Shown in pieces: positions 3,456-42,100 of a stretch of DNA of 64,000 nt. Both the position numbers and the translations under genes were made by a program. Position 1 is the first letter of the stretch. The number at the start of each line of letters is the position of its first letter. Where the stretch lies: contig QPMI01000040.1 in assembly GCA_004431415.1 (NCBI GenBank), positions 310,001 to 374,000 on the forward strand, read 5' to 3'. The stretch comes from Cyanophora paradoxa CCMP329. Lineage: Eukaryota > Plantae > Glaucophyta. Below the pieces are notes generated by a model. The model had not been told where the DNA came from, did no database searches, and saw nothing but the letters and a program-made list of their open reading frames with translations.

Positions 3456-6400
3456 TCAGCGTCGAAGATGGGTGATGCGGTGAAGCGCGAGGGCCTTGCC
3501 GGCTTCAAAGGCGACCCAGTAGGCAGCCAGAATCCCCAGGTTCGCCCACTGCGCGAGAACGTCAATTTATCCAGGGAAAACAGGTCTTCAAACCAGATGC
3601 GGGCGAATAGATAGATACCTGGCGATCAGGGTTGAGGTCGTAGCGCGCCAGAACAGCCGCTCCTGTCGGGAAGCAGAGCTCCGTGGAGGCCATTCTGTCG
3701 ATAGAGCGAATTGCATGTCGATTGCGGGGCGAAAGGGTGGCGCGGGGTGGGGGAAGGGGGGAGGGGGGGGGGAGAGGGAGGGGGAGGGTGAAAGAGCGGT
3801 TGCGCACTGGGGGCTGCAACCCTTAAACACGATGTTGGACAGCTCGTTCGTAGCCAGGCCCTCGAAGGGGTACCTGATTAAACACTTTAGAAGGCGAGAT
3901 TGCAATGCAGCCGGGTATGAATGGCTTATAGCTGCACCGGAACCAGTGGAGGTAGAAGAACCAAATCCACGCCCGAGGGATGTCTGGGCCCGGAATCTGC
4001 GGTGCATCAGGATTATAATTATTTCCGCTGGATGCTGAATCGCTGGAGAAATGTGAGCCCGCACCATGAAGCCCGCGAAGAAAGCGCCACACGCAAGGAC
4101 GGCAGAGGCAATCGCGAAGACTACCGGTGCAATCTGCACGACGAGCATGACGACGAGTTGAAATGAAGCACCGCGGCGAAGCGGAGGGTCCCGGACCGGC
4201 AGGGCAAGAGCGAGGAACTCGATAAATGAGCTGTTCACGAGCGTCCAGACACACGCCATCAGAACCGCGTATCCCATATGACTGCGAACCCGGGGTGAGC
4301 CGCGTGACGCGAGATGCGAGACGTACGCGCGAGCCGCACCCCTGAATCCGGAAGCCGCAAAGGGGGTACACAATGGCGATGCAGGCGACGGCGTTGACGA
4401 TGTGGAAGGCGGACAGCACGACGAGGTTCGAGACCTGAGGAGGCGATCGGGGCCTACACGGAACCTGAAGCAATATATATACGGCACCTGCTGCGCAAGG
4501 GGATTGACTAGACCTGTGGGGTGTCACGATCAGCGGCGATCCAAGCTTAGGCGGCCATGGCCACGCGCGCGGTCGAGGTCGGCGGCTCGCGCGCGTGCAC
4601 GCCTTGGGCCCGCTCGCGGTAGTAGACGTCTCGCAGGCTGCAGTGGCTCGTGATGTCCCCAAGCGCTCTGAAATCAAACAGTTCGCGATCAGTGCGAACC
4701 CACGAGCGATGCGATTTGGTAGACCCATGATTAGGGAGCGGACCGGAAGTAGAAGTATAGCGTCATGCAATACATGGCGGAGAGGCGGAGGCGAGCGGAT
4801 GGCTGGTCCTCCCCCATCTGGAACCTGGATGCACAGCCCCGAGTTCGGAAATTAAAGAAGCCAAGGAGCAGCCCAGATTGCTTGCAAGCGAGCACCAAGT
4901 GGTGCCGGCGATGAGAGCGACGATTAGGTTGCTGAAGACAGAGGTTAGAGATGGAGGAGCCATTTAAATCCCCAATCAAGGTAGCACGCACCTGGCAACG
5001 CTGACCCAGAAGCGCTGCCGCTCGCGCCACAGCCAGCGGGCCTTGCGGTCAATCAGCAGAGCGACCTGAGGTGTGTGTCGACTTCAATGATATGATCATG
5101 AACTCTTCAGGAGTCAAGTGTTGGGTCACCTGGCGGCCAAAGCCCGGTCGCTGGGGCACGCGGGGCGCCTCCTTGGCGGATACTGTGCGAGAGCGGGAGT
5201 CCTTGAGGGGCAGAGCGTCAAAGGCGCTGGACAAAGCGAAGAGCGCACGGGCGGCCTCTAGCTCCGAAATCTGCTCCTGAAGCGTCCTGGCCAGGGCACT
5301 TGCCTGCAAGGGTCGAATTGCACACGTAGCGTCTGAAAGCTCTAGATCTTTCCAAGCCCACCTGGAACTGAGCCGCGATTTCGTCGGCGGCGCGGTTCAT
5401 GCGCGTACGGGAGAGCACTGCGGTCGTCGGCGCGGGAGCGCCCGCTTCCGAAGCCTCCCGCTCGGACGCGGGCGGCGGGCTCGAGGCCATGCCCAGTTTA
5501 TTTGTGATGCGCAAAGCAGTCTGGCCCTCTGACCGCCGGGCGGACCGGCCTGCTGCGGTCTGCACATGTACACGCAATCCGATCAGAACCGCACTTGTGC
5601 GCAATTTTTCACATTCCGCGCGCGTATTTTATAATCGATATCCCTGTACCTCGATAACGAAATCTGCCGGGTTGCGGAATGGGGGGAGGTCGTAGCCTGG
5701 CCACGGAATGATTAATATTGACGAGCGTATGAGTGCGACACCGAACCTGGCAATAACGTCAACGTACCCAGCTCGGAGAAGAAGGCAAGTACTTTCGAGC
5801 AGCGCTCCCCAAGCTCTCCTGCATCGGCAGTGAGACGACCTTCGCGCTTTCCGATGGAAACATATTGTGGACCGCAGAATACGGGGAAACCGCCCTTCTT
5901 CAGCAGAATCAAGTAGTCGAAGAGGGAGAAAAGCTGTTGCGACGGCTGGCTGCTCGGCGGGGACCATCAGCTGGAGCCACTTTTCAAAAGAAATGTACAC
6001 GCAGCGTGCTTACTGGATCGTCGCAACAGTGGCCTGCCCTTTGCTGGCAATCCGGCGCAGCAGCTGCAAAGCATTAGCGATAAGAACCAAATCCGAAACG
6101 CTATATATGGGAGTCCAGAGCGCTTAAAGCGCTAACCTTGCCGACGCGCAGTGCTGCCATCGAGTCCAGGCCAGTCGTGGGCTGCAAAGGAGGCGGCGTA
6201 AGAAGCAGCGGAGTTGAGAAGCCGCGCGTGAGTGCAACGAAGGCACGGGCCTCGTCCAGGAACAGAATCTGGGGGCGCGGAACGAGCTCCATCGCAATGC
6301 ACGTCCTCTTACGCATCTGGCGGGTCCGGAATCGAATACGTCATTCCCTCGCATATTTCCAGATGCATGTTGCCGTCTACCTACCTCGACAGGAATTCCG

Positions 6401-9400
6401 CCCCCCGCGAGGGTCCCGATCACGAGGCCTGCAGCTGCCTCCAAATCGAGCTCCCGCAGTGCCCACTCCGCCTAAAGCCGAGCACAATCGATCGAAAGAG
6501 TTGAGTTTCAGTAAAGGGCAATTCAACGCCTGCCGCGCACCGCGGCGAGCTTTTCGTGACGGGGCACGCTGTTATCCAGGCGGACCATGGCAGAGAGCAC
6601 AACCGCTTCCCGAACCGTCTGCGGCGCGTGAGGAGGGGCGGAGCGTGAGTCACGATGAACGCCGCCTCCGATCCGAGAACGAGCGAGAGCGGCAGAAATT
6701 ACGAAGAGCACCATGGTTGGGAACAGGAGGTCGAACTGTTCGACGTACGAAGAGAAGCGCGCGAAACCGCCGCCGGGAGGCAGAGGTCGCCCGTTCAGTT
6801 TGATCTCGCCCGACACGGTCCCGGTAGTCTTCCTCCCCGCCAGAACATCGATCAGAGTAGTCTTTCCCGCTCCCGAGGCGCCCATGAGAATAGTGAGGCT
6901 TCCGCCCCGCACGATCCCAGAGACACCGTTGAGGAGCCGCTTCAATTGGCCGCCTGCAGAAAGATAGCGATGAGGGTCCAAGTCCCTTCGACAACATCGA
7001 TTTCGATCGGGATCGGAGCGCACCGGTCTTCTCGTCAGGAACGTCGTAGCAAAGATTGCGGAACGTGAGCGCCGCAGCGGGTGGCCGCGAAATGTCATGG
7101 TATTCGTCCCCGCGCGCTACCGAGACGTTGACCACCAGGACTGAATTGCCTGGCATCTCCGTCTGCTTATAATTGAGACTGGGATCCGATTTTCCTGCAG
7201 GACGATGCGTGTCCAGCTCGGCCGGAGCGGGTGCCGAGAACGTCTCCAGTTCGACGCCAGGAAGCTTTTCCTCAGCGACAGCCATCGCAGAAGAGAAGGG
7301 ACGCCGGGGCCGGGAAAAGCGCGCGCCAAGGGCCGCCACTGTGAGCCACGCAAGCCAGTAGCCCAGCGAAATCAGAACATTGTACCTGCCGAAAAATTGT
7401 GTGAACCAAAGGCAAGCGCTAGATCATGTACTTGAAAAGTGGAGCTCACCAGTACCAGGCCGGGTCAGTGTTCATTCCAAAAGTCTCTAGGATGGCCGCG
7501 CCGCCGTTCGGCAAACCTTCCACCGACAAGTCCCACAGTTCTGCACAATCGGCGCCATTGATTGACAGATTACACGACGTTGTGCGGCCGTTCGCACCGT
7601 TGACGCAGAGCGCCTCGTGGGGGTACGAGAAGTAGGACCAGTAACGGGCCCACTTCCACCAAGAGGGAAGCGACTCTCGCGGGACTACAAATCCGCAAAA
7701 GATGAAAGAGAGGGCAGGCAAAATAGGCGCCAGCGAGGAGCAGACCTGACCAACGAAAGGTTGATTTGCTCGCAGCGATTCGGAATTCGCACAGTGTCGA
7801 ATCGAAATCAAGGCACCTCGGGGACGGCAAAGAGCTGGCACAGAGCCAAAACAGACGCGTCGGCGATCAGTGACATCTGTGCATAGGCGGTGAGACATTT
7901 GATTTAGCTCTGACGGGAGAAACGGCATGTAGCGCTGGCGAGCCTGGAACAGAACGAGGAGGAATCTCGCGAATCGCTGGTGCCCGTCGACCACTTGCAG
8001 GCCGGCCGCATGGTACGCCACCAACGAAAATAGTACGACCTGGAGAGGGCTTGTTAACAAACGGGCTTCCAACGAGGCGAAAGCTCACTAACCTCGACGA
8101 AGAGTCGTGGAATTTCCGATATGACATTCGCGACAACCCACTGCAGATTCACTAAGCCGCCGAGCGCGCACGAGAGGCCAGGCATGAGAGAGAACCAGGC
8201 CCGCGCACAAGCTCGGGGCGGTACGTTCCATCCTGCGTCTGCGCGTGCATGACCCGCCGATTTTCGTAGTTGATGTCGATCTGTCATGATATAGAATGTC
8301 ATGATCGAGATCTGTCTGTCGATTTGATGTAAAGAGAGGGGACCTTCGAGAGAGCCATAAAGGCAAAAACAAGGAGGCAAGCCTGCACGCAAACATTTGT
8401 CTCCGAGGCTCAAATTAAACACGCACGCAATTGCAATGTGGCGCTGGCGCAGGCGACGTCAGCATGCGCGCCTGCAGATACGAGACGCGGTTGACGGCCC
8501 CGGTCGACGTTGCTGGCATCTAGAAGCAGGTATGTTCGCGGCGACGGCCGCGACGTCATATGTTAGGGACAGAACGAGACGATGAAAGGGGCGACGCGTA
8601 CAAGGCAGCGTTTACCTGGCAAAAGAGAGTGCCGAGAATGAAAGCGATGACGAGGGACTGAATGATGCGGGAGAAAAGGGGCTCCCGATTCCGGAAGAGG
8701 AGGACGTTGAAACGGGCGTACAGAAATTTGAACTGCGTTTGCCTCCAGTTAACTCTCAGATGCAGACTGAGCGATACCTCTTATCTTCACTCTACCTGCT
8801 TTGTACCAGGCGCAGCGTACTGGCGCTCGATATTGATCTGCATATCCACGCATCGAAATAAATCCGCCGGATGGAAACCAGCTGCAGGCGGGACTGCTTT
8901 CACCTCGGGGACGACGTTTGCAGAAGACAGGCTAGATCCCCCCGTCAACGCTGGGGGAAGCGGCTGACTGCGCGACGGACCGAAAGTCAGAGGCAACGCG
9001 TATACGCAGAAAACCCAACGATCATGCTGTAACGCACTTCAGCGCCTTGTTATCGGCGAAGAGGGTAGACGCCGAATCATCGACTTTAACCTGGGCGTGC
9101 GATTAATTAAGTACTGTGCGACAAAGCTGCAAACGAAACGCACCTCAAAGTCGGCTTCGCCCGAGGGAATGAACATGGCATTTGTGCCACGTACACGGGA
9201 CTCCGAATTGGACGCGATCGAGACTAGAAAGTCCTGCGCATATATACGATCGATTCGATCAATGCGCTTAACATATGAAATAGCAGTGCGGCGCACGGGT
9301 GGGCTCAGCGCGTCAACATTCTTGATCCCCAGCACATCTTCAAAGTGACGGACGGGAGCGAGGCCGCCGGAACCCTTCGGAACGTTAAAACACGGAAGCT

Positions 9401-11009
9401 TAGAAGGCACTGGGGGCCCGCGGACCTGGTAGACGCATCGTCCGGGAGCAAGGAGGATCAAGTCGTCAAAGAGGCTGTACACCTCCCTGCGCAAGAACCG
9501 CGTTTTGAGTTTCGAAGTGTATCTGTTTGAATTTGTGCAGATGGTTATCAGACCATGAGGGCTGCAGAAGAGAGCAAATGACGGCCACGCCGGACTCGGC
9601 AAGGCTGCGGAGCGCGCGGCAGAGGTCGAGCGACGCTGCCGCGTCCAAACCTGCGCAGGGGCCGCTGTCGGCAAGCGAAGGTGAAGGGAAGCGGGTGGTG
9701 CAGGATTGCGTGCCGTCTGTGGGCTGGTCCAGAATCACTACGCCCTTGCCTCCCTAAGAGGCCGCCGCCCTTTTAAAGAGAAGATATCGATTAAAAGGCG
9801 AGTGGGGGGTCACACCCCCACGAGTTGGCTCGCCACGGTCAGCCGTCGCCGCTCGCCGCCTGAGATACCGCGGACGTTGTGATCCCCGACAGAAGAGTTC
9901 ATCACCTGCGAAACACACACATTTCAGTAAACCATGGCCAACTGACATCAAAGCTTGAACCCAGCCGGCGCGCCTGGATTAGATTTAGAACCATGCCCGC
10001 TGCGAGCGTCATTGCGTGCGCGTCCCGCAGGTCCGTGGCGTCCCGTTCGTCCTTAGTGGACCGCTTCATATGCGCCGCGAACTCCAGCGCTTCCTTGACC
10101 GTCAACTGGGCTGCATATATATACGGAATATTATATATCAAAGGCTTAAAGTGGCAGTGTATGGATTCGCACGGTAATGGCACCCGTCGTCTTGTTGGAC
10201 AATGACCACGCGCCTGCGCATTTTGCGTTGGGATTCGGAGAAGTCTCGATTGCAATTGTCCACGCACCTCGCAAAGGCAGCGCTGTTGCGGGCGAGCTCG
10301 CCGTTAAGCTCCACTCTCCCACCCACATGCCCAGCTTGCTTGAGCTCTCCGCAGCGGTTTGCAAGAATTTGCAGCAAAGCACTCTGCACTCAGTGCCGAT
10401 CCTCAATTCAGAAAGGAGATTCTGAAAGAATTCAATGCTTCTACCTTGCCCGAGAAAGCCGGCCCCAAAACACAAGTCATGGTACCCGGCTGTGAGACAA
10501 AAGTGTTTAGAATCAAGACAGAGTTTTACACGCACGTAATTATAAACACGCACGAGAAGCTTGCCCGAGATAGGGGCGAGCACGTAACGCCGGTGCTTGA
10601 CAAGACCGATGCTCTCGCTGATGCTCCTGCTCCCGACCATCGGTTACGTAGACCACGGGCTACTGGCAGGAATAATTATATAAATGCGGTGGCGCACCTT
10701 GCCAGCCTGGCCCCGACTTTGCGCACTTGCGGCCCGGACTGCGACTGGAGCTGCGGCGCGGCCTCCTTGACCGAGAAACTAACATTCTCTGCACAGAAAA
10801 ACCAAGCTTCAGAAAATTCGAACTGTCTAAAAGTTTGTTAAGAAACCGCGGAACCAAATGTAAGGTGACAAGTGCCGTAAGTCTCGATGTCAGAGAGAAT
10901 CTAGTCGGCAACATTATGTAGTAGAAAGGACATGAAGAGGAATCATCGCTCTCTTTACCTGCGCTGGCTGGGACCCTACACTGGGCTGCTTCGGAACGAC
11001 CACGAAGTT
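3456..11009 (-). CDS. Full-size ABCG/PDR transporter exons (NBD1-TMD1-NBD2-TMD2)
   Basis: NBD1: GPAFSGKS, VRGISGGERRRLT, ILDQPTDGLD, SLLQP. TMD1 about 7440-8650 (FIFCGFVVPRESLPSWWKWARYWSYFSYPHEALCVN). NBD2: GASGAGKTTLIDVLAGRKT, YVEQFD, GIPVEMRKRTCIAMELV, LFLDEPTTGLDS. TMD2 about 3460-4950 (FFAGFM, IPGPDIPRAWIWFFYLHWF, RYPFEGLATNEL). Confidence 0.95.
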
Positions 11010-13594
11010 CTGCGACGACGTCAATCCCAGTTGCACTTTCCATTTGAATTCAATCAGCGAATTCGAAGCGGAGCAAAGGCACCGGAGGTAGGAGGGAGGC
11101 GGAGGGGCGACCCGAGGCCCGGGGGTGGTCCGACGCCGCCACGAGGCGTTCGATGAAAGCGTCGAGCCGGCGCTTCGGCTCCCCTCTCAAGAGCTGCGAC
11201 CATTGAATGTGAGCGAGCATCTTCACCGGAACTGCTTTTCCTGGATCTACCAGACCTGCTTTTCGACGGTGCGGCAGAGGTTCTCCAGATGCTTGGGGCT
11301 CGCATCGATCATGCTGGGGAGGGGCGGCAGACGAGTTAGCTACAGGGCGCCAGGCGTCGCAAAGCGGAAATGTAAATGTCGCGAATGGCAGGGCACTTGT
11401 CTAGTCCGGGTGGGAGACGGGGCGACAGGCGAATAAAGTCTTCCCCCCACAGGTTCTCGGCCTGCGCATTCGAATTCGAATTCATGAGGTTACGTCGCGT
11501 GGACTCAGAGCAAGAGCCAGTCGACATGTGTACCACGTCCGTTGAGCAGTCTCCGTTGCCTGCGCCGCTGACATCGATACCGATATGAACCGGTCCAGTC
11601 TAGACCAGTCTACGGCCAGTCTAGATCTAGTGTTGACAAGTCCGGCGATGCGCACCGTCAAGAAAGCAAATTATAGCAGGGACGAGCCACCTGCGCGGAC
11701 GTTTTCAGCTCCAGATTCCACCTGCAGAGCGCACAGATATCGATGCAAGCTTGCTGTACGACACGCACTCCAGAGCGTTCCACTTGCTCGCTGCAGAATA
11801 GCTGCAATTGCACGAACGTCGCGTATTAATGTTATTACGTTGCATTTTATTGTGTATGGAGCTGAGCACCTCATCGGCACGTCGGACGAGCCAGTTCCCA
11901 GTGAAACCATGAGAATCTTTCGCCCTGCAATTGCAAGCAAGGCCCCGATAAATCAGCATGCAAAATGCAGTACCCCGGATGAAGAGCGCTCGCAGTCGGG
12001 GGTACCAGGGAACAGGCGCGCGGCTTCCGCGTGGGCGATAAGCGCCGGATTGTTTGAAGCGAAACTGAAGGGGGCGTTAGTTGGTAAAGATAGCCTCGGT
12101 CTTCGTACTGCGCACCAGCCGTCGGCAAACGTACTGTAGTCCTTGTGCACGTAGATTCCAGGGCAGTGCAAGCGAACCGGAGCCAGCATACCGGGAGCCG
12201 CGACCGCCGCCTGCGCATGCGCGAACCGTTCAACGGTTGAACAGAACTGAACGCCTCGCAAATGTCCAGGCGCGTGGAAGGGTGAAGCATGCACGTGAAG
12301 AACGTCGTGGAGCAGCAAGTTGTGGGCGTCGGGGTCGGCGAGCGCCTGGGACTGGAAGACGACACGGCGAGGGCACGCGGCTTGTGATTCAGGATTACGA
12401 ATTTAAGTAAGATACTGCTCACCGTGGAAAAGTAGACCGGGCATCTCTCCTCGAGATCGTATGTCGGGATCTGCGGAACAGCAGGGACGCATGCCGATTT
12501 AGAGAGCGAAAACGAGAATAGGTCGAGGAATAGGCACGACAAGGAAGGCGCTGGTGTCAGAGAATCGGCAGTCTCCGTAGAATTCCTTGAAGACCCCATG
12601 GACCTTGTTCTGGGGAATTAGAATAAGCACTTATAGTTAGACACGAAATTTGAATGTCAGAGTGGTGCACGTGATCAAACATCGGGCCGCGGAGGGCGCG
12701 AGCGATGGCGACTGGGGGAGAGTAGCTTGGAAAGACATCGATCCAGCGCTTCGTCAATGTAGCGACCTGCAGGTCGCTACGATTAATATTGGCGCGCACG
12801 ATTGGCTAAAAGGTGGGAGAGGAACTTTACAGGGCCGACTTCAAATAAAACAGACTAGAGTCAAAGACGTCGCTGACCAGATTCTCTGCGGGGACGATGG
12901 GCTTCCCGTCGCGAACCCCAAAGCACGACATGGCACACAGCGCTCCGGCGCTCGTCCCTGCGGATCTTACTATCAGCTGCAGCTGCAGCGAACATTCTTC
13001 GGATCTTGAATATCTTGAATTCGAATCCGTGTTATCAGCGGCGGATGTTATGAGATCGGCGCACCGGCGACAACATCGAATAGTTCATGGATTGGCTGCA
13101 TCGATCGCGATTGCCGCGGGTCCGGATTAGCGAGCGCTCGCGCCCCGGCGGCACGTGTGCACTGTGCGCACCCTTCCCGCTCTCGCCGAGATGTACCTGC
13201 GTTATTGCGTGGGCGATTGCGTATACAAAGCAAACGCGCGCGCGCGCGCGCGCGCACTCGATAAGCTTCGCCGGAATGATGCCATGGGCTGCGCAAAGGG
13301 CTCGCCGCGTAAGCGAGAGCGAATTCGAAGGGCCGGGCTCGAGCTCGGGCGAGAGTTTAGATGAGTGGAGTTCACCTCCTCCGCCATCTGGGGCAGGGGC
13401 GACATTGATCAAACTTGAAAATACGCAAGACACGCATGCTCGAAATTAAACGGACCAATGGAGAGAACGCGAACGGGAGGTAACTCCGACGTATCGGCGC
13501 CAGCGGCCACATGCGCGGATCCGGAGTCATATCTCTCCGCATCAGTCCGGAGTCCGGGTCGCAGCCTCAGAAGCGGCACGCTCTCATCTCCCAT
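3456..13594 (-). CDS. Multi-exon patatin-like phospholipase + full-size ABCG (PDR-type) transporter, predicted as one fused ORF
   Basis: ATG at 13594; TGA at 3456-3458 after QWANLGILAAYWVAFEAGKALALHRITHLRR. A canonical 73-nt GT-AG intron (11082-11010) joins the last patatin exon (...SASLLPP) in phase 0 to NFVVVPKQPSVGSQPAQ|ILSDIETYGTCHLTF|ENVSFSVK, which is the ABCG N-terminal motif. Confidence 0.7.
11083..13594 (-). CDS. Patatin-like phospholipase (PNPLA) domain exons
   Basis: Spliced motifs: VRVLSI-DGGG-AHGIIPAKLIE (oxyanion loop), PIHELFDVVA-GTSAG (GxSxG nucleophile), FADGCFASNNPALIAHAEA (catalytic Asp), KILMVSLGTG, LDNMIDASPKHLENL. Confidence 0.93.
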
Positions 13595-13699: not shown

Positions 13700-14270
13700 G
13701 CTAGCCTATACTATGATAGCTAGTAGTGCACGTGCGCCAGCGGCCACGCCGGCCAGCTGCAGCCTGCAGCCTGCAGCCTGCAGCCTGGCAGGGCCCACCG
13801 GTACCCCGGGCCACCGTGGCACCCGGCCCAGCGCTGCCCGGCGGCAGGCCGTGGCCATGGCAGGCCCTGCAGCTGACTCAGTGAGTCCCCGGGCCCCTGA
13901 CTCTGCAGGCTGCAGTCTGCAGTGCTCTGCACTGCCAGGCTGACTCAGTGACTCTGCAGCTGCAGCGGCAGTGCAGCCTGCTGCGGCAGTGCTGCAGCTG
14001 CCTGCAGGCTGCAGCCTGCAGGCTGCAGGCTGCAGCTGCAGGCCTAGGCTGCCGGAGCTGCCGCGCGCGGCACTGCCGCAGTGCCGCACTGCGGCACTGG
14101 CCGCCGGGTGCCGCAGTGCAGTGCCGCGCGCACTGCGCGCGACAGTGCGGCGGCACTGAGCCGGTGCCGCAGTACTAGTCTGCGCGCCATGACTCCGCGG
14201 GACTCGGGAGTCGGGACTCGGGAGTCGGGAGTCGGGACTCGGGACCCGGGGAGTCGCGCGCGTGACCCGC
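13700..14270. repeat. Low-complexity tract of CTGCAG/GCAGTGC and GAGTCGGGACTC units
   Basis: Dense reiterated ctgcag, cactgc/gcagtg and gagtcggga motifs; no credible ORF. Confidence 0.8.
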
Positions 14271-23039: not shown

Positions 23040-23780
23040 CGCTTGCCACCGCTTGCATTGCGCATGCTGCGCATGCGGATTGCAATTGCAGGCAATATAT
23101 TACCGGGGTAATTGGCACCGGCCTGTGGCCACTGGCCACTGGCCACAGTGGCCAGTGGCCAGTGGTAGGCACTGCCACACTGGTAGCTGCCACTGCCTGC
23201 CAGGGATGGGAAAATTTTTGGGGGTCCCCCTAGAGTCCAAAAAGTTTTGCAAAAATGTTTGCCTTGTATGTAAAATTTTTGAGAAACTTTTAGAATGTAT
23301 GGGAAAAATTTAGAAACCGCCAAAAAGAATGCGAATGTTTGCACAAAACGCTACTGCTGCACTCTAAACACGTACCCTGGTAGCTGCCAAGTTGCAAGCT
23401 GCAACGTTGACTTCTGCAGCCTGCAGCCTGCGCATGCCAGGGCTGCCGCGGCTGCGCATGCAGCCTGCATGCAGCGGCATTGCAGCCTGCCAGGGCTGCG
23501 CATGCAGCTGCAGTCCAGGCCCAGGCTGTGCAGCCTGCAGGCTGCAGCTGCAGGCTGCTCTCAGAGTCTGCGCATGCCGCTGCGCAGTGCAGCCTGCCCC
23601 AGTGGATGCAGGCTGATGACTAGTGATGCAGCTGTGCAGCGGCTGCAGCTAGCCTAGTAGCCTGCCAGGTTGGCCGCTGGCAGGCTGCAGCCTGGCAGGC
23701 TGCAGGCTGCAGCCTGCAGCCACGGCCCACGTCACACACGGGCCACGTCACGTGCCGCCACGGCCGCCGCGGCCCGCCAC
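23040..23780. repeat. Palindrome-rich low-complexity tracts (TGGCCA, CTGCAG, TGCGCA, GCATGC)
   Basis: Reiterated short palindromes, interrupted by an AT-rich segment at 23201-23379. Confidence 0.75.
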
Positions 23781-27145: not shown

Positions 27146-30100
27146 ATGACGCGCACGGCAGCGCTCCTGGCAATACTGGGCGCGCTCCTCCTGGTGCCGG
27201 CTCTTTCCCAAGGAGCCACTCCGCCGGACGCCCCCGCATCGGTTTCGGTCAGCAGCATCTTTGGCACTAGAGCGGAGATCGTAGTCACATTTGGGTACAA
27301 TGGCGGCTCAAATATTACGAGCGCAAGCGCGAGCTGCCAGCTCAGTGCGGGCGGCTCTGCAGTATGGACGGGCAGCGTCGCGGTGGCGGCCGGAGCGGCG
27401 AATGCAAGCCTGACAGCCTTGGGACTGCAGCCTCTCACATCGTACGTCTGCAACGCAAACGTCACAAACGCCGCAGGAACCTCTCCTAACTCTTTTTCGT
27501 TGCCGTTCAACACCTCCGGTCAGTCATGCGCCTCTATCAAAATAATTCGCTTGCTCGCCCCTATCAACATAAGCTTAAGTGTGAGCAGCTCTGTATACCG
27601 TGACGTCGACTACGCTGGCCACGGGGCCAGGCGCCGGCCGAATTCGAGCCGCTGGCGTCATGTTTCGAAACCAGACCGGCAGCCTAAAATTTGCTGCCGT
27701 GTGTGGCGCCGAATCCCCACAGAATCCTTATGTTGCGACAACTATGGTTCTCGACGTCGGTGCGCATATATATAGGTTATCATACACATATCCGCCCTGT
27801 AGTAACACGCTGACCACACATATGCCATCCAACCTTTCTCGCCAGCCTCAAACACGTGGACGCTGCCGAACTTCACGGCGCCTCTTCCCTTAATGTTAAC
27901 GGCTTGCAGTTGGGACGGCGCCGGTGCGTTATCTTGTTGTTACGCGCACGCGCCATTTAAATTCCAAGTTCGAATTCTCATTTTGAATTACTCGCGCATG
28001 TTGCGTCTGTGTGCACGTCAATCCATGTAGACCTTGTCTACTGTGCCGGTTCGGGATCGCGCACAAACGTTCGCCGGGGAAAAAATCCGAATAACGTTTG
28101 CTGCAGGGGGCTATATTTCGACGGGAGAAACCACGGCCTTTTGGAGCTTTCCCGTGAATCTGACCGGGGAAATCGTCGACTACACGGCAGCGTGGCCTCT
28201 CCCGGAGTATCGCTCGTCTCACTGTAGCACTTTCTTCAACGGAAGCTTTTACGTGAGCATACAGCTGCAGAACAGAATCAAAATCATTAAGTTTGCGGCT
28301 CACGTCAAATTGTGTCGGCGTCTCGCAAATAGCTCGCGGGTGGACATACGGCTTCAGGAACCAACAAGCTGGATTTAATCCGGTGAGCGCTGGCGCCCCC
28401 TCGCTGGCAGTTATCTGTTTTTACATGGGACTTCCTTGTTCTTTGCAGCTGGTCGTCTGCCACAGGATGGGTGACTGAGATCTCTCAAGTTGAATCCCCG
28501 TACAGCAGCGTTTACTACGGCGGATGCACTCGGCTGGGTCAGTGGTCGTGCTCGCATGATAGAAATTGAAAGAGCGCTGATAACGTCTCCTTGCTGTTTC
28601 CAGGGAGCAAGCTCTATGTCCTCGACGGAGATTATCCCTCCAACCCTCCTGTGTCACTTTAGTGAGCTCGATCTCCGCTGACCTGAGCCGCAGCTCAGCT
28701 GCTTTCGTCCTTTCCACGCTGAACAATTTATTCCCAGCGAGGTCGAGCTGGCCGGAAGCGGCCCTCGGTCCTGGCGTCGGGTGGACACGCTTGCGTCGAG
28801 CGACGTGGCGAAGGATGAGGGCCCCGGATCGCGTCTTATTTTCGGTGGCTGTGGAGCCTTTTTGCTGCATGCGGGATCAAACTCTACCAGCGCCGAAATA
28901 TTTGAGCCTAGACTGCTCGACCCGACCAGTACGTATACGCAGCTCATGAGCTCGACACGCAATCGTTTTACACAGCTTCGCAGCGGGCGCTGTCGTCTCC
29001 TCCAGCACACCCGACGCTGTGCAGGAGTACCCGAACCTGCGCCAAATGGCCTACGGATCGGATCTCGATACCTGCACGGTTGTTGCGGCTACTGGGAAGG
29101 ACCCTAACACCAACGAGAAAATGAATAAGGCGTACCTCTTCACCGGTGCGTGCGTTGTATGTGAGCTTCGCGAAACACGCGCGCAACTTCTGCTGCAGTA
29201 AGGCAGCTGGAGCTCACATCTTCATCTCCTTCCGACACTCTCAGCCCGACGCCGACGCCGCTCCCCACTCCATCACCCATACCCGGATCTCCATCGACGG
29301 CCGGAATAACCTACCTGTCGACCTCCAGCGTCCCCTTCAACAGCGGCGTGGCCAGTCTCAGCATCTCCGGGCTGGACCCCGCCGACCATGTGTCGTCGGT
29401 CTCCGTGTCGTGCTCCTTCTCTGACCCAACTCTGCCCCCGCCGTTCGCGTCCTCCGTGGCGGGCTACTACGACGCCTCGTCCTGGACGGGATCGCAGTGG
29501 AGCGACCTGTCGGGCAACAGCAGGCACGCAACTCAGATCCGCGGGTCCCCCAACGTCACGATGGTCGCCTCAACGAACGTGCTGGGCGGCGGAATGACCG
29601 ACGGCATCGTCATTCCGGCCTCGGTCATGAACGCTTCGACTACTGCGTATACCTTGGTCCACGGCTGCCGTTACACATCGACGGACTTCAACAACGGTCC
29701 GAAATGGGGGCGCATCATCGATGGCACCACTCAAGTTGGCTTTGTATCCGGCTTTTATTCACAATTGCGTGCCGTGTCCTCGCGTATGGGAGGCTGGATC
29801 ACGCCCTCCGACTCGACTACTAACCCGGGGCAAATAGACGACTGGCTGCTCAGTGTTGATCGTCCCCAGAACTACCGCGGCAACGGCCTCGATCTGACCA
29901 CCTGTCCGACCTGCAGCAATTCTCCTGCAGACCAGATCGGAGTCAATTACGGATATTACACGTTCAATGGCAATCCCTCCCAGCAGTCGGAGTGGCAATG
30001 CTCGTTCGTACTCGTGTATGACCGGGAGCTGTCCGACAGCGAGGTGGAGGAGGTGGAAGTCTGGGCGCGCCTGCGCTACCCCGGAGTCACGTTCCCCGGC

Positions 30101-33100
30101 GCAACGGACTGGCAATACACGACTCTGGTGCCGCAGTCGGCGAGCTCCGTCATCGCCCTGGTTAGCTGCGCCACGCGCTTGCTCGCTACGTTCCCTTGGC
30201 CTCGGATCGTTTGCATTTTCAATGCTAGTACTGATGCGCTGGCCGGGGCTCTAGGTTGGCAAGGCGTATGGATACAGCTTCCCGGTGAACGCAGACATGC
30301 GCCAAGCTCTCTGATGCGCTGTCTGTACATATCTGACTGCGCGTTTCCGCAGGGGCCCATTCGTGCCAGCACGACGTACACCAGCTGCGTTGTTCAGCTC
30401 GCGAACTCCAACGGGACCGCGACAGCGAGCCCCGTCACGTTCACCACAACCTCCTCAGGGGGGAGCCCCGCGTTGACCAGCCCCCCGTCGGCCGCCGGCA
30501 TCAGCTACCTGGCCACCTCAAGCGTTCCTTTTAGCAGCGGCGTGGCGAGTCTCAACATTTCGGGGCTGGATCCAGCGGACCAGGTGCACTCGGTGTCGGT
30601 GACGTGTCCGCCTGTCGTCAACACAACGCTCGATCCTCCGTTTGCAACCTCCATTGTGGGCTTCTACGACGCTTCGTCGTGGACGGGCTCGCAGTGGAAC
30701 GACCTCTCGGGCAACGGCCAGCATGCAGCTACGATTCGCGGGGCTCCTAGCGTCGCGACCGTCGGCACCATCGCAACAAATGTGATGACCGGCACCACTG
30801 CCGATGGCATAAGCATCCCGAGCACCGTCATGAGCGCTTCAAGAACATCGTACACCGTTGCGCACGCGTGCCGCTACACCGCAACCTCGTTAGGCGCAAA
30901 CACCAAAGGTATCTTGATGGGTACGAACATGTACAGCACGTGGTTTTCGGGCCACTTGGGGGGTCAGCGCGGTGTGTCAAAGCACGGAGACCGGTACATT
31001 ACTTCGCAGAAGGGTGTACCATCGGCCATCAACGACTGGATTCTCAGCGTCGATGAACCTATGCAGTACCGCGTCAACGGCCGGGACCGCACTTGCACCG
31101 GTACCTTTATGTGCAACCAAAGTCCGAATCAGTCCCCCACGTCGGACACGATTTCTGTTAATTATGGAGCGTCTTCGGGTTATTATTCGGACTGGCAGTG
31201 CGCGTTCGTCCTCGTGTACGACCGGGAGCTCTCCGATAGCGAGGCGGAGGAGGTGGAGGCGTGGGCGCGCCTGCGGTACCCTGGAGTCACGTACCCATCG
31301 TTTGACTGGACGTTCACGACCCCGGTGGACGCGTCAGCGACCTCCGTCGTCGCTCAGGTATTTGACTCGAAGTTGCGGGCATTATAGTGCGGAGAATTTG
31401 GAGTCGTCATTTTTAATTATAACGCCCTTGGAATTAAAGATCTATAACACGCGGTGGCCGACGTCGACGCTCACACTTGCATCGCGCATTTGCGCAGGTC
31501 GGCAAGCCTTACAGCTTCCCGGTAAGCTGTTCGAAATGCGTTATGCTTTATGGCAAATGGCAAGCATTATGGCAAATTAAATAGCCGCGAAGTATGCGCA
31601 CGCAAACCGACTTTCGCGCTTCAAATTCGATTCGTTATTACTTTGTCACAGTGTAATCTGCGCCTGCGCACGCAGGGGCCCATTCGCGCGGGAACGACAT
31701 ACACCAACTGTCAAGTGCAGCTGACAAATGCGGTCGGCAAAACGACAAGCTCTGTCACGTTCACAACAAGCTCCGCTACGTTCACGACGAGCTCTCCGTC
31801 GGCCCCATCCGCCTTCATGCTGTCCAGCCCAACGCCGAACCAGAGGAACGTCACTCTTGTCGGCGGAAACGCGCAGTTCGTTCTGGAGGGCCTGAGCCCA
31901 GCGGATGGGCTGCAGAGGGCCACAGTGACGTGCGATGCATCGATAGGCGACCCGCTCGCGCAGCCGCCGTACGCCGCGTCCATCGCCGGCTGGTACGACG
32001 GGACGTCGTGGACGGGCACCTATTGGGGCGACCTGAGCGGCAACGGGCGAAATGCGACCGACACGAGGGGGAACATTATAGCAACTACTGACTCTTCTGG
32101 CGTGCCTGTCCTTGAGGGAGATCAAAACGCAGGTGTCCGCATCCCTACGACTGTCATGAACAGCGCAACCTCCCAGTACACGCTGGCGCACGGCTGCCGG
32201 ACACGTGATGACGACAGTCGCCTCGTCTACGGTGTGACAAAGAATTGGCTGTCGGGCTTCTGGGGGGACTCTGCGCCTGTCTATGGCGTCGCTTTCCACG
32301 AGGGATGGATCACACTCACATCTATGCCGGGCAATGTCCCTTCTCGCATAGATACATGGCTTCTGAGCGTCGACCGTCTTCGTTCATACAGGGCGAACGG
32401 CGTTGATCGGACAACGAATCCGTATGCTGGGTCCTCCACAGCCGACCAGATATCCGTTAATTACGGCAAGCATGACTACGATCCAGAATTGTCCTCGTGG
32501 TGGCAGTGCTCGTTCCTCATGGTCTACAGTCGGGAGCTATCTGATAGCGAAGTCGCCGAGGTGGAGGCTTGGGCGGTCAAACGGTACGGCTACGCTGGCC
32601 AGTTCCCTGGCCTTCCATCTTCCTATCGGTTCTCTGTCAACAAGACGCTCTCGGGATCAGAGACATCTACTGTCGTCCCGGTTCGCATTGCACATATATA
32701 ACTGTATAAATGCCTAAAGAGAAATTACCTTCCGGGTTCATTGTATCCTTATCTTCTTTTCCGCAGGTTCCTCTTGTCAATGGTGCGATGTACATGTGTT
32801 CGCTGGCGCTCGAGAACGGAGGGGGCACCTCGGCGCCGAGCGATATGCGCAATGTCACGTTCTCCACCATGCCTACCGGTCCTCCATCAACAGCGCGTGT
32901 CACATACGTCTCGACCTCCAACGTTCCCTTCAGTGGCGGCGTTGCCAATCTCACCATCCTCGGGCTGAATCCGTGGGACCAAGTCTCATCGATCTCCGTG
33001 ACATGTCCTCAAGTGGGCGAGACCTACACGACATCGGTGCCGCCATTCGCGGGATCCGCGATCGCCCAGGTGATCATGAGCATGCGATCCCAAATTGTAT

Positions 33101-36100
33101 ACCAGCGCTAGTACTAATTAAACATAACCTCCTCTGCGCTGCACAGATTGGCACTGCATTCTCTCCACAGGGGCCTATTTTTGCTGGCACAATGTACAGC
33201 AACTGTGCGGTGCAGCTGACGAACGCAGTGGGTACCACCGCTGCGAGCCCCGTCACGTTCATAACACGGCCGGCATCTGCCCCCTCGACTGCGGGTGTCA
33301 CGTACGGATCGACCTCAAGTGTCCCCTTCAGCAACGGCATGGCGAGCCTGAACATCAGTGGCCTCAATCCCACTGATCAGGTCTCCTCGATCTCCGTGAC
33401 CTGCCCTGTAACAGCGAATACAACGCTGGCGCCGCCGTTCTCTTCGGCTCTTGCGGGCTTCTACGCGGCCTCGTCGTGGACAGGATCGCAGTGGAACGAC
33501 CTCTCGGGCAACGATCGGCATGCGACTCAGACCCGGGGCACGCCCACCGTAGGCTCGTTCGGTTCGGCAAACGTGCTGCAAGGCAGCATCAACGACGGCG
33601 TCATATTTCCGGCTACCGTTATGAGCCCCTCGACGACTTCGTACACTTTTGTGCACTCGTGCCGCTACACTGCAGCATCCTTGGGCCCCACGACGAACCG
33701 CATTGTCGAAGGCGTCACCAAAAATTGGCTATCGGGGCATTTCCTCGGCCTGCGAGGTGTTTCTTTTCGGGAACGGTGGATCACCCTCGAAGAGAATGTA
33801 GTGCCTTCAAATATGGATGATTGGATCCTGAGCGTAGACCGTCCCCGGAATTACCACGCCAACGGACAAGACCGCACCTACTGCACAACCTGTGACTCTG
33901 AGACGTATGGGGATCAGATATCTATCAACTATGGCTTCACAGGCATCAACAACTATCCGTCACCGATACCGGGTTCAACACTTCAGTATTCGGACTGGCA
34001 ATGTGCGTTCGTTGTTGTATACAACCGAACGCTCTCCGATCTGGAGGTGGAGGAAGTAGAGGCCTGGGCGCGACTGCGCTTCCCTGGGATCACATACCCG
34101 GGATTCGGCTTTACATATACGACTTCGGTCCCGCCTTCAGCGAGCTCTGCAGTCGTCCAGGTGCACAGCCGCGAGCGCATCGTAGCCACTGACTGAGCGC
34201 TAACGTGTGCATGCAGATTGGCAAGCCTTACGGATTCCCGGTAAGCAATGCCGCTGCGTCTGTCGCCATCAGCCAGTCCCCATTCACGAATCGCGCAAAA
34301 AGGAAACTGATTTCACGTGCTCGCTAGGGTCCTATTCGTGCTGGCATGACCTACAACAATTGCGAAGTGAACCTGATGAACGCCGTGGGCTCCGCAACTG
34401 CGAGCCCTGTCACGTTTACTACCATGTCGCCAATTCCGCTGGTATCAAATATATCCATAGTCTCTGTAGGGGCGCGAAATGCAACGATGGCAATCACATT
34501 CGAGGGAGATGCATCGTCCGTATCGGCCAGCTGCAGTCCTTCGACAGGCGGAGCAGCAGTCTGGGGGCAATCAACAAGCGTGACACAGACTTCGACTACG
34601 ATCGTTCTCGCGATCCAAGCTCTCGAACCCAACACGACGTACGTGTGCCAGGCCAACGCGACGAGCGCGGCGGGGACCTCGCCCGCGACGCTCTCGACCT
34701 CGTTTACCACGGCTGCAGCTGCGGAGGCGCCTTCAACTTCGTTTATCACGTACGTATCGACCTCGAGTGTCCCGTTCAGCAACGGCGTGGCGAGCCTCAA
34801 CATAAGCGGACTGAACCCCGCCGATCAAGTATCCTCGGTATCCGTGACATGTCCCGGTACAGCGGACACGACGCTGGCCCCGCCTTTCGCGTCATCCGTT
34901 GCAGGCTTCTACACTGCATCATCTTGGGAAGGATTCGGGTGGTATGACCTCTCGGGAAAAAATCGTAATGCACATGACATTCGTGGGAATCCCAACGTAT
35001 CGACAGCTGCAGTGGGATCGACGAGAGTTTTTCAAGGAACAGTCAACGACGGAATCAGACTTCCGACTTCTGTTATGAGCTCGTCGACGCCAGCGTACAC
35101 GCTCGTGCATTCGTGCCGCTACACTGCCACAGCCTGGGGCTCCACAACGAACCGAATCATTGACGGCGTGAACGGCGGGTATTGGATGTCAGGCTTCCAC
35201 ATGTCTCACAACGGCGTGGCATTCCATGGAGTGTGGATTACAGAGCAGACTGCTGTGGGAAATCCTAACGACTGGATCCTCAGTGTCGATCGTCCCGAGA
35301 ACTATCGCGCCAACGGTCAAGACCGCACAGCCGCTTGTACTTCATGCACTGGTTCTGTTTCTGTTCCCTCGGACCAAATGTCAATCAACTACGGAGGAGG
35401 CGGGCAATATGGCGGCGAATATTCGGACTGGCAGTGCGCGTTCGTCCTCGTCTACGACAGGCTCCTCTCGAATGCCGAGGTGGAGGAGGTGGAGGCCTGG
35501 GCGCGTATGCGCTTCCCTGGTATCACCTACCCGAACTACGGGTTCACGTACACAACCTCTGTGCCGCCGTCGGCAAGCTCCGTAGTCGCCCAGGTGAGTG
35601 ATCGAGGCTATCATCTGCTCTTAATACGCGAAGGGCTAACACTCATGTTCGCAGGTCGGCAAGTCGTACAGCTTCCAGGTAATTTCATTTTAATAGTGCT
35701 GCGGATGATTAGAATGCACAATTTTAATCTGCATTCATGCAGGGGCCGATCCGCGCTGGGACGACCTATAGCAATTGTACGGTGCAAGTATCGAACGCTG
35801 CGGGGACGATGGCCGCCAGCCCTGTTACGTTCACAACAAGTCTGGCCGGGCTCCCTTCAACTTCAGATATCACGTTCGTATCGACCTCAAGTGTCCCGTT
35901 CAGCAACGGCGTAGCGAGCCTCAACATCAGCGGCCTCAATCCTGCGGATCAAGTCTCCTCTGTATCCGTGACATGTACCATTACAGTGAACACGACCTCG
36001 GCCCCGCCGTTCTCTTCGTCTGTTGCGGGCTTCTACGCTGCCTCCTCGTGGACAGGATCGCAGTGGAGCGACCTCTCGGGCAACAACCGGCATGCTAGTG

Positions 36101-39100
36101 AAATTCGCGGGAGCCCCACGCTGGCGGCCGTCGGGTCGACAAACGTGCTGCAAGGCACCATGAACGACGGGATCCGGATTCCGGCTTCCGTGCTCAGCTC
36201 TCCGACGACTGCGTACACACTCGTGCATTCGTGCCGCTACAACGCACCCGCTTGGAGCGCCCCTACAAACCGCATCATTGATGGCGTTACCTCCGATTGG
36301 GTGTCTGGGTTCTATACTGGCCGGCGCGGTGTCGCGTTCAAAAAGGGTTGGTGGATTGGAGGTGACAACATGATATCCGCCGAGGTAGCTCCGAATATCA
36401 ACGACTGGGTCCTAAGCGTCGACCGATCCAGGAACTACCGCGCTAATGGCAAGGACCGCACCAATCCATGCCCCTCCTGTGATTCGTACCCCCAATCCGG
36501 CGAAGCCGATCAGATCTCCATCAACTACGGCTACTCCGCTATTTACAGATCTCAGTGGGCCTGGGGATTTCCGCCGGGCACGAGCTCTAGCAACGAATAC
36601 TCGGACTGGCAGTGCGCCTTCATCCTTGTCTACGATAGGCGGCTGTCAGATGCCGAGGTGGAGGAGGTGGAGGCCTGGGCACGGCTGCGCTTCCCGGGTG
36701 TCACCTACCACGGCATGCAGTTCACTTACACGACATCTGTGCCGCCGTCGGCGACCTCCGTGATCGCTCAGGTAAGCGACCTAGGCTATAGCTATCATCA
36801 CCTTTCCACACGCGATGGACGACGTCAACATTAACATTTCCATCGCGCGGTTGCGCAGGTCGGCAAGCCTTACAGCTTCCCGGTAAGCTGTTCGATATGA
36901 GTTTTTGCTTTATGTCAAATTAAATAGCCGCGAATTATGCGCACGCAAGCCGACTTTTGCAATTCGAATTCGAGTTCGTTATTACTTCGTAATCCGCGCC
37001 TGCACACACAGGGGCCCATCCGCGCGGAAACGACGTACACCAACTGTCAAGTGCAGCTGACAAACGCGGTCGGCAAAACGACAAGCTCTGTCACGTTCAC
37101 GACGGGGGCTCAGCCGCCTCCACCATCGCCCTTCTCGCTGTCCAGCCCAGTGCAGAACCAGAGGAACGTCACTCTTGTCGGCGGAAACGCGCAGTTCGTT
37201 CTGGAGGGCCTGAACCCAGCGGATGGGCTGCAGAGGGCCACAGTGACGTGCGATACGTCTGTAGGCGACCCGCTCGCGCAGCCGCCGTACGCCGCGTCCA
37301 TCGCCGGCTGGTACGACGGGACGTCGTGGACGGGCACCTATTGGGGTGACCTGAGCGGCAACGGGCGAAATGCGACCGACACGAGGGGGAACATTACAGC
37401 AACCAACGACTCCGGCGTGCCTGTTCTGGAGGGCGGCACAAATGAAGGCGCTCGCATCCCTACGTCCGTCATGAACAGCGCGACCTCCCAGTACACGCTG
37501 GCGCACGGCTGCAGGACACGTGATGATAATAGTCGCCTCGTCTACGGTGTCACGAAGAATTGGCTCTCGGGCTTTTATGGGCCACTCTACGGCGTCGCTT
37601 ACCACGAGGGATGGATCACGCCGGAATCTATGCCGGCCAATGTCCCTTCTCGCATAGATAGATGGCTTTTGAGCATCGACCGCCTTCGTTCATATAGGGC
37701 GAACGGCGTTGATCGGACTTCGAATCCGTATGCTGGGTCCTACACGGCCGACCAGATATCCGTTAATTACGGAAATCCGGATCCTATATACAATTTAGAA
37801 CTGTCCTCGTGGTGGCAGTGCTCATTCCTCATGGTCTACAGCCGAGAACTCTCTGATAGCGAAGTCGCCGAGGTGGAGGCTTGGGCGGTCAAACGGTACG
37901 GCTACGCTGGCCAGTTCCCTGGCCTTCCTATAACAGCTCGTTACACGTTCAATAAGACACTCTCGGGCTCGGAGACATCGACTGTCGTCCAGGTCCGCAT
38001 TTAATTTCTAACATTATATATATATGTATAGGTTACAGATCAATGTTATTTCAGCTTTATTGTTTGATGCTTGTTTGACGTGCAGGTGCCGGTGAAACCT
38101 GGCGCAGCGTACACATGCTCAGTCACGCTCGAGAACGCAGGAGGCACCTCGGCGCCGAGCGATATGCGCAATGTCACGTTCTCCACCATGCCCACCGGTC
38201 CTCCATCAACAGCGCGTGTCACATACGTCTCGACCTCCAACGTTCCTTTCAGCGGCGGCGTTGCCAATCTCACCATCCTCGGGTTGAACCCTTGGGACCA
38301 AGTCTCATCGATCTCCGTGACGTGTCCTCAAGTGGGCGAGACCTACACGACATCGGTGCCGCCATTCGCGGGATCCGCGATCGCCCAGGTGATCATGAGC
38401 CCACGAACTCAAATTGTGTACCAGCACTAATTATTAATTATATATATTACCTCCTCTGCGATGCACAGATTGGCACTGCATTCTCTCCACAGGGGCCTAT
38501 TTTTGCTGGCACAATGTACAGCAACTGCGCGGTGCAGCTGACGAACGCAGTGGGCACCACCGCTGCGAGCCTCGTCACGTTCATAACACGGCCGGCATCT
38601 GCCCCCTCGACTGCGGGTGTCACGTACGGATCGACCTCAAGTGTCCCCTTCAGCAACGGCATGGCGAGCCTGAACATCAGTGGCCTCAATCCCACTGATC
38701 AGGTCTCCTCGATCTCCGTGACCTGCCCTGTAACAGCGAATACAACGCTGGCGCCACCGTTCGCTTCGGCTCTTGCAGGCTTTTACGCTGCCTCATCGTG
38801 GACAGGCACCCAGTGGAACGACCTCTCGGGCAACGATCGGCATGCGACTCAGACCCGGGGCACGCCCACCGTAGGCTCGTTCGGTTCGGCAAACGTGCTG
38901 CAAGGCAGCATCAACGACGGCGTCATATTTCCGGCTACCGTTATGAGCCCCTCGACGACTTCGTACACTTTTGTGCACTCGTGCCGCTACACTGCAACTT
39001 ACAGAGACACCACAACAAATCGCATCATCGATGGCGTTACGAGCAACTGGCTTTCTGGGCACTACAATGGCCTACGCGGTGTCTCGTATCGTGAAGGGTG

Positions 39101-42100
39101 GATTACACCTTTTTCAAATTTTCCGTCAATTCCAAATACAAACGACTGGATTCTGAGCGTTGACCGTCCCCAGAACTACCGTGCCAACGGCCAAGATCGA
39201 ACCACTTGCCCCGTTTGCGAAGTCCTCCCTGCTGACCAGATATCGATCAACTTCGGGTACTCCCCAATGTTGAACCATAACGTGAATCCCGGGTCCTACT
39301 ACGAGTACTCGGCCTGGCAGTGTGCATTTGTCATTGTTTACAATCGGACCCTCTCGGACAGCGAGGTGGAGGGGGTGGAGGCCTGGGCGCGAATGCGCTT
39401 CCCTGGGGTCACCTATCCGAATTATGCGTTCACGTACACGACTTCCGTTCCGCCTTCGGCGAGCTCTGCAGTCGTCCAGGTAGACAGCCTATAACATATC
39501 AACGCATGTCCTATCTCTTTAACACCGACGATTCGCACGCAGATTGGCAAGTCTTACGGTTTCCCGGTATGCTTGTTGAAAGTTTTACGCAAGACTCTGA
39601 GACGTGCTAGCATTTTCCATTAACAATATCGCGCTTTGATGCAGGGGCCCATTCGCGCGGAGACGACATACACCAACTGTCAAGTGCAGCTGACAAACGC
39701 GGTCGGCATTACGACGAGCTCTTTCACGTTCACGACGAGCTCTCCGCCTGCCACCGCCCCGGACGCACCCTCCTCGGTCTCGATACCGGCGAGCAGCATT
39801 CGGGGCACGACCGCGCAAATTGCAGTCTCGTTTGGCTTCAATGGCGGCTCAAACATCACGAGCGTGAACGCAAGCTGCCGGCTCAGCTCAGGCGGCTCCG
39901 CTGTGTGGGCGGGCAGCGTGGCGGTGGTGGCCGGGGCGGCGAACACAACCCTGCTGGCGACTGGGCTGCAGCCAGGCACGTCGTACGTCTGCAGCGCAAG
40001 CGTCAGCAACGCTGTGGGAGTCTCCCCGAGCACTTCCTCGGCGCCATTCACAACAACCGGTCAGTGTTGCCCCTGTACTTGTGCCTCTGCCCCTGTAGCA
40101 ACCCTAGACGTCGACCGTACCCCCGCACCTGTAGCTGATGCATGTGCCCCCCGGCAGCTCTCTACACATTGACGACCGCTTCCATGGCTGCGGGGCCTCG
40201 CTACAGCTCCAGGGCTGCTGGCGTCATGTTCCGTAATCGCACTGGAAGCTTGAAGTTTGCCATGGTTGGTGGGAACGTGGCAGATAAAATTGCCAGCGTT
40301 TTGGTTCTCGACGTAGGTGAGCAGCTCACATAGCAGCGGATTGGCATACTTTGCAGTCACTGACACCTCTCTGCAGCTTCAGGCATGTGGACAACACCGA
40401 CGCTCACTGCTCCTGTTCCCGTGATGAACTCGGCTTGCAGTTGGGATGAGGCCGGTTAGTTGTTTCGCAGCTGCAGATCACTAGTACTGTTGGCCTTTCT
40501 CATGATGATACCGTCTCTTTTGCGTTTCGCGCAGACACTATTTACTGTTCCGGTCCGCGAGCTCAAGCTGTGATCTGCTTGAACCTTGAAATCTTCCTTA
40601 AACCGATACGTATATACATTTGCAGGGGGATATTTTGGTGCTTCCCAAGAACACGCGACTTTCTTTTGGAGTTTTCCAACGTCCATGGCTGGAAACATTG
40701 TTGATTACTCTGCCACCTGGCCTGTGCCATCTGGCCGGGCCGGCCATTGTAGTGTGTTTTTTGACGGAAGCTATTATGTGCGTATGAAGCTGCCACTTCC
40801 GGTGCGTGAAGCTGAGTGTGTAGCTTTTAACCTCTGCTTTCACATCCCAGGTTGCCGGTGGTGCCGGTCTCCCCAGTTTTATTTTGATACGGTGCGGTTC
40901 AATCAGTATAACATGATTCTCCGGATTTCATCCTGATATGCGGGTACAGCTGGTCTCCAGCAACGGGCTGGGTGACTGAAATAGGTTCCTCGGCATTCTC
41001 ATCTCCTTGGTTGCCCGGCTGCAGTCGCCTGGGTCCGTATTTCGTTGAGCCTGTCTTGTTTGAGGTCGAAAACACGGCTAATATTTCTTCAACGCGCGGA
41101 TGACAGGCAGCAAGCTCTACGTCCTAGATGGATATAGTACTTATGCGCTCTAGTAAGCTCTTATGCTGCCTTTCCATTTGATTTACGCTCTCGGATAATT
41201 TGTTCTGACATTATTTTTCAAGCGAGGTCGAGCTTGCGGGGAGCGGTCCGCGCTCGTGGCGTCGTGTAATTACGTATGCTACAAGCGACGTGGCGGGGCC
41301 AAGTCTGATGATCTTCGGTGGATGCGGGAGGTTCTTGTTTCATGCTGGAGCAGGGGCATCATTTCTTCCCCGCCTGATCGACCCCACAAGTGCGCATTGC
41401 TATTGCCTTTCACTATTGCAGTGGATAGAGACTCGCTTGTTGTGTTCATGCCTAATCCTTTCACCATTACCAGCGGGCGCAATCGTATTCTACGGCTCGA
41501 ATTCGTTCACCATCCCTTCGTGGATTGCGCACGGATCGGAGACAGCGACATGTACATTAGTGGCGTCGACCGGAGACACCGCCTTCCGCTTTCCAGGTGA
41601 CTAGCTATAGTCGCAATCGCGTAACGTTGTTCAGCGCGCGACTTATTAAATTGTGAATCCCGCCACATGTACAGCGACACAGCCCGTCACGGCACCGGAA
41701 GCGCCGATAAAGCTGACGACCACCAGCCTTTCCCTCACATCAGCAGTTCTCGCCATCACTCTTGGGTACGATGGAGGCGATGCAATCGTGACCGCGTCAT
41801 TCGCCTGTACATTTGCAAGCGGGGGGCCCGCTGTATGGGCCGCCTCGGTACCAGTGGATTCGGGGGCAATATCTGTCTCTGTGGTCGCTTCTGGACTGCA
41901 AAGACTCACATCATACACGTGCCAGGCGAACGCGACAAATCGTGTCGGAACCTCGAACAGCTCTTTCCCTTTGTCCTTTACAACGACTGGAGAAGCACCG
42001 TCGGTGTTGCTTTCTATCTCGGTGCCTGCTTCTCAAATTGTAGGCAACGTCTCAGTCTGCTCTACAGCGCCAGGGCCTCCACGAGGATATGGTAAGCAAA

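Follow-up and report, generated by a model that had tools for sequence, protein, structure and literature searches.

A 64,000-nucleotide stretch of the Cyanophora paradoxa CCMP329 genome (assembly GCA_004431415.1, contig QPMI01000040.1, positions 310,001 to 374,000; here called the window) contains a gene that very probably encodes a patatin-type lipase domain fused to a full-size ABCG transporter. The gene lies on the minus strand at 3456-13594, is dense in introns and splices to a single open frame of 1765 residues that runs from 13594 to a stop codon at 3456, with a patatin domain, a linker and a full-size ABCG following one another along the chain. We placed 69 introns (70 exons) by hand and used the spliced model in script-based frame checks and in comparisons with fetched proteins. 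Introns measure 51-113 nt (median 68) and include six GC donors (GC-AG) and one AAG acceptor. The whole model is colinear with two C. paradoxa paralogs, and the patatin-ABCG arrangement appears to be an undescribed architecture that joins two known families.

The patatin-ABCG joint is shared by paralogs

A protein search with the exon of the second nucleotide-binding domain (NBD2) returned C. paradoxa gene models from EukProt as the nearest relatives. Two of these, P0123 (g21651, 1763 residues) and P0125 (g1155, 1751 residues), are 74% and 51% identical to the window protein, align along the entire 1765-residue model and each combine, in one chain, a Patatin domain with a pair of ABC_tran and a pair of ABC2_membrane domains (Pfam). 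Both alignments run ungapped through the splice point between patatin and ABCG; past this junction, both paralogs match exon-20-like residues and not the peptide that would result from reading through the intron. An ABCG start methionine at the joint is absent from all three copies. The linker (residues 363-405) is 84% identical in P0123 and 49% in P0125, which is comparable to the patatin domain (79% and 52%) and to NBD1 (81% and 57%), while the three other inter-domain linkers lie well below it (38-59% and 16-21%). Mainly because the paralogs share architecture, register and conserved residues through the joint, we judge it highly probable that the fusion is real and that the window gene is one member of a small gene family.

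The initial annotation had proposed that patatin is spliced in frame onto ABCG, a reading for which the open 1765-residue model and two colinear paralogs of the same architecture both argue, and its junction coordinates were confirmed throughout. The junction intron (11010-11082, 73 nt, phase 0) has its donor at 11082 and its acceptor at 11010, and contains the read-through stop (11052-11050) as well as an out-of-frame ATG (11043) that starts six bases past it and whose frame hits a stop in the next exon once the intron at 10958-10901 is removed. Scored with position matrices built from the gene's other 68 introns, the junction donor ranks 22nd of 69 and the acceptor stands at the median; only 0.8% of the other GT and 4.4% of the other AG sites in the gene equal these scores. 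The junction intron is also intron-like in base composition (28th of 69, with just 4 of the 70 exons scoring as high), the flanking exons 19 and 20 are exon-like, and a tblastn search of P0123 against the raw window gave one segment that stops exactly at 11083.

It had further been claimed that ABCG has no obvious start of its own. This mostly held, with the qualification that ATG 11043 could in principle serve as an in-frame start by way of weak sites: a donor at 11036 (score 3.8) joined to an acceptor at 10976 (3.0) or 10964 (0.75), where the junction sites score 7.4 and 6.4. The scores of the weak sites are at the bottom of, or below, the gene's real range, and the resulting ABCG-only form would lose the conserved first part of exon 20 (10959-11009, linker residues 377-393; 88% identical to P0123 and 35% to P0125). 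None of five poly(A)-like motifs tried was found in 11082-10901.

Other C. paradoxa models extend the family. P0122 (g10192, tig00000158) is 100% identical to residues 1098-1277 and is thus the public model of the window locus; it begins at residue 1098 (window 7098-3456) and omits residues 1278-1387, so that the public annotation splits and truncates the gene. P0124 (g5818), with an NBD2 89% identical to that of the window gene, and P0129 (g20833) are further fragmentary members of the Cyanophora ABCG clade. In a quick NBD2 tree that includes these two fragments, all five Cyanophora sequences group in a single clade with a long branch (Shimodaira-Hasegawa-like approximate likelihood ratio test support 100), which fits a single fusion followed by duplication. 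A supplementary file of the genome paper ties a partial Trinity transcript to g21651 (PMC6704402), which indicates that this paralog is expressed and leaves the joint itself uncovered. P0125 contains a 26-residue insertion (its residues 339-364) exactly at the window gene's exon 18/19 boundary; it looks like an intron retained in the public model, and its site suggests that P0125 and the window gene have this intron position in common.

Features of the two halves

The patatin domain and its C-terminal arm occupy exons 1-19 (11083-13483, residues about 38-376). Over their full length, residues 42-340 can be aligned with natural patatins (31% identity and E 7e-39 for the best match in a small set), and PF01734 is above the Pfam cut-off in P0123 and P0125. 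Folding was done on the 74% identical P0123, standing in for the window protein. The model of its patatin domain reaches a predicted local distance difference test (pLDDT) score of 90 and has potato Pat17 (1OXW) as its best solved match, with a template modelling (TM) score of 0.75. The arm behind the last patatin helix is confident in this domain model, and its post-junction part is not confident in a three-domain model. We considered exon 20 as a firm part of the patatin fold and rejected it, since its pLDDT of 84-96 in the domain model falls below 50 in the longer model.

The window gene has the catalytic Ser82 in a G-T-S-A-G elbow (12950-12952) and Asp227 in a D-G-C motif (12121-12123), and both P0123 and P0125 keep this Ser and this Asp. 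The glycine loop of the oxyanion hole, spread over exons 1-3 (13284-13456), is also present and is followed by His52 (13286-13284) in the window gene, by Lys in P0123 and by Arg in P0125. Because the patatin motifs described are G-x-S-x-G, D-G-A/G and Gly-Gly-Gly-Arg (PMC10291501), the window copy deviates at two places, His52 and D-G-C, although 6 of 74 scored stand-alone patatins have D-G-C as well. The initial annotation's statement that the catalytic motifs are intact is correct for Ser82, Asp227 and the glycines and slightly overstated for the rest. With His52, the window copy may or may not be an active lipase.

Residues 1-410 contain neither a signal peptide nor a membrane helix (hydropathy maximum 1.53), which predicts a cytosolic lipase adjacent to NBD1. 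At residues 4-9 (13568-13585), an acidic dileucine-like motif has a similar counterpart in P0123 and is absent from P0125 and from 185 other full-size ABCGs fetched. Dileucine-type motifs can direct transporters to the vacuole or tag them for endocytosis (PMC3576705). The N-terminal motif is thus a possible endomembrane sorting signal, which would be more in keeping with a membrane protein than with a lipase in solution. With regard to the origin of the domain, the matches sampled were prokaryotic and viral, all of them about 30% identical or less, and for these reasons we claim no donor. Library searches with an in-frame piece from about 11961-12398 came back blank, because this piece is short and broken by introns.

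From about residue 400 to its end, the protein can be aligned with full-size ABCG transporters of the plain type, to which it is about 29% identical. It shows the reverse topology of a full-size ABCG in a single chain: NBD1 (9297-10900), a first transmembrane domain (TMD1; 7312-8732, with PF01061 on exon 37 and six membrane helices in the paralog model), NBD2 (5650-7086, PF00005) and TMD2 with the stop codon (3456-5065). What sets it apart is the start of the chain, where full-size ABCGs usually have a short extension followed by NBD1 and no enzyme domain, whereas here patatin precedes NBD1.

All three copies have the nucleotide-site asymmetry of PDR-type transporters. The NBD1 site is degenerate, with Gln in place of the Walker B Glu (D-Q) and Leu in place of the H-loop His, and its signature is intact; in NBD2 the Walker A, the Walker B Glu and the H-loop His are canonical and the signature is degenerate. 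The same asymmetry is found in Pdr5, which has one active site (PMC8421411), and the best solved matches of NBD2 are Cdr1 and Pdr5. The fungal-PDR trait of a Cys in the NBD1 Walker A is absent (the window gene has Lys). Unlike in fungal PDRs, PDR_CDR (PF06422) is weak in the Cyanophora paralogs, with no stretch above the Pfam cut-off.

Possible coupling of lipid hydrolysis to export

Lipid transport is widely attributed to full-size ABCGs, of whose true substrates and mode of lipid hand-over little is known. The architecture described here would be consistent with a tethered cytosolic patatin lipase joined to an asymmetric ABCG exporter that exports the products of the lipase, a function to which we assign about an even chance. 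A single gene would place a patatin lipid acyl hydrolase on the cytosolic side, tethered to NBD1 of a full-size exporter. Patatin would deacylate lipids of the cytosolic leaflet adjoining the pump, and the pump would carry the freed fatty acid or lysolipid across the membrane, either to the cell exterior or to a compartment of vacuole type. The predicted topology makes such a coupled lipase-exporter plausible. In Pdr5, the NBD1-TMD1 half is relatively immobile (PMC8421411), and by analogy this half could be a suitable platform for a tethered enzyme. A more detailed proposal, which we put forward tentatively and consider rather less probable than the general function, is that the Cyanophora family has evolved into a "cut and pump" machine in one chain: the cytosolic patatin, kept against NBD1 by its conserved arm, would pass fatty acids or lysolipids directly to the full-size ABCG, perhaps at a membrane of vacuole type, and the paralogs would range from active lipase to lipid sensor.

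Such a natural lipase-ABCG chain would, in the manner of a Rosetta stone, point to fatty acids or lysolipids as the cargo of ABCG. The presence of lipase and ATPase in one molecule would allow either to be disabled and export to be measured. The fusion would also indicate that an entire enzyme can be attached at an ABCG N-terminus, in parallel with the Tag proteins among ABCBs.

Several observations weigh against a coupled fusion of this kind. Both His52 and D-G-C are non-canonical. The AlphaFold three-domain model gives no confident arrangement of patatin and NBD1 (predicted TM score 0.58, linker pLDDT below 50). The public model recovered for the locus spans residues 1098-1765 only, and the paralog models are BRAKER1/Augustus predictions that need curation according to their authors (PMC6704402).

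The likeliest alternative accepts the fusion as real and holds that the patatin of the window copy is weak or inactive and regulates the pump, as a sensor or feeder that binds lipids. His52 stands where the described Gly-Gly-Gly-Arg motif (PMC10291501) and the paralogs would place an oxyanion Arg or Lys, the family includes D-G-C and D-G-W variants, and a linker of such high conservation points to mechanical coupling. All three copies have nonetheless kept Ser, Asp and the glycine triplet over about 50% divergence, the paralogs retain Lys or Arg, and D-G-C is shared with stand-alone patatins; we regard this alternative as unlikely, though a serious one.

Somewhat less likely still is a real but loosely coupled fusion, in which the pump chiefly serves to hold an active lipase at a particular membrane and exports unrelated compounds, or in which cleavage after translation separates the two parts. 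This would agree with the lack of a confident domain interface in the three-domain model, with the often broad spectrum of PDR pumps (PMC8421411) and with the proline-rich character of the linker, but conservation of this linker far exceeds that of the others in the protein, and a simple tether would have no need of it.

Finally, dense gene packing with possible overlap of untranslated regions in the compact C. paradoxa genome (PMC6704402), the weak in-frame alternative start and a gene predictor able to merge neighbours could together suggest two abutting genes, with patatin ending at 11050, ABCG starting separately (for example, at ATG 11043 through weak splice sites) and the fusion a prediction artefact, but this is improbable given three copies (51-74% identity) that hold register and conserved residues on both sides without an ABCG start methionine, the loss of conserved exon 20 residues that such a start would entail, a stop-to-ATG spacing of six bases and the absence of the five poly(A)-like motifs tried in 11082-10901.

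Related systems, distribution and surrounding sequence

A comparison of the preferred reading, a single lipase-exporter chain, with known systems places each half within an established family. Like Pdr5, Cdr1, plant PDRs and dictyostelid full-size ABCGs, the window protein has the NBD-TMD-NBD-TMD order with a degenerate first and a canonical second site, and it has a PDR-like insertion between the first strands of NBD1, as at linker LD1 of PDR exporters. It differs from full-size ABCG/PDR exporters by about 400 additional N-terminal residues with a patatin domain, and from plain ABCGs by its low identity to the nearest of them (about 29%) and its long branch in the tree. The patatin half shares its fold, G-x-S-x-G elbow, Asp motif (here in the variant D-G-C) and the glycines of the oxyanion loop with Pat17 and with bacterial Pat17-like/CapV-CapE phospholipases, and departs from these in its fusion to a pump, its conserved C-terminal arm and, in the window copy, a His for the basic oxyanion residue.

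The nearest precedent in kind is the set of Dictyostelium TagA, TagB and TagC proteins, which likewise combine a hydrolase and an ABC transporter in one chain and in which Tag processing is tied to transport (PMC3743828). Tag proteins pair a serine protease with ABCB, whereas the window protein pairs a lipase-type patatin with ABCG, and the TagC protease is displayed outside the cell, whereas the Cyanophora patatin is predicted to be cytosolic.

The patatin-ABCG architecture has so far been seen in one species, C. paradoxa. Among the 120 + 120 listed protein-search matches, PF01734 occurs only in two Cyanophora models; the other listed ABCG matches carry no patatin, in a sample that is thin outside Cyanophora and includes no direct architecture search, and no other glaucophyte protein is among the named matches. 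The 30 nearest Atlas models have patatin alone or with laminin G, and among about 90 patatins fetched from prokaryotes or viruses there is no fusion with an ABC transporter. We found no description of a patatin-ABCG fusion in the papers searched, and the initial annotation likewise knew of none; the architecture is present, without comment, in public gene models.

Upstream of the gene, GC-rich low-complexity tracts with short palindromic and tandem units lie at 13700-14260 and 23415-23518. On the plus strand, Ig/FN3-like scaffold segments recur in several long frames at 29165-39491, and 43143-51866 is an intronless array in which a 309-bp unit occurs approximately 24 times (94% matches); the array encodes FN3-like repeats and is broken by stops or frame changes near 48485-49521.

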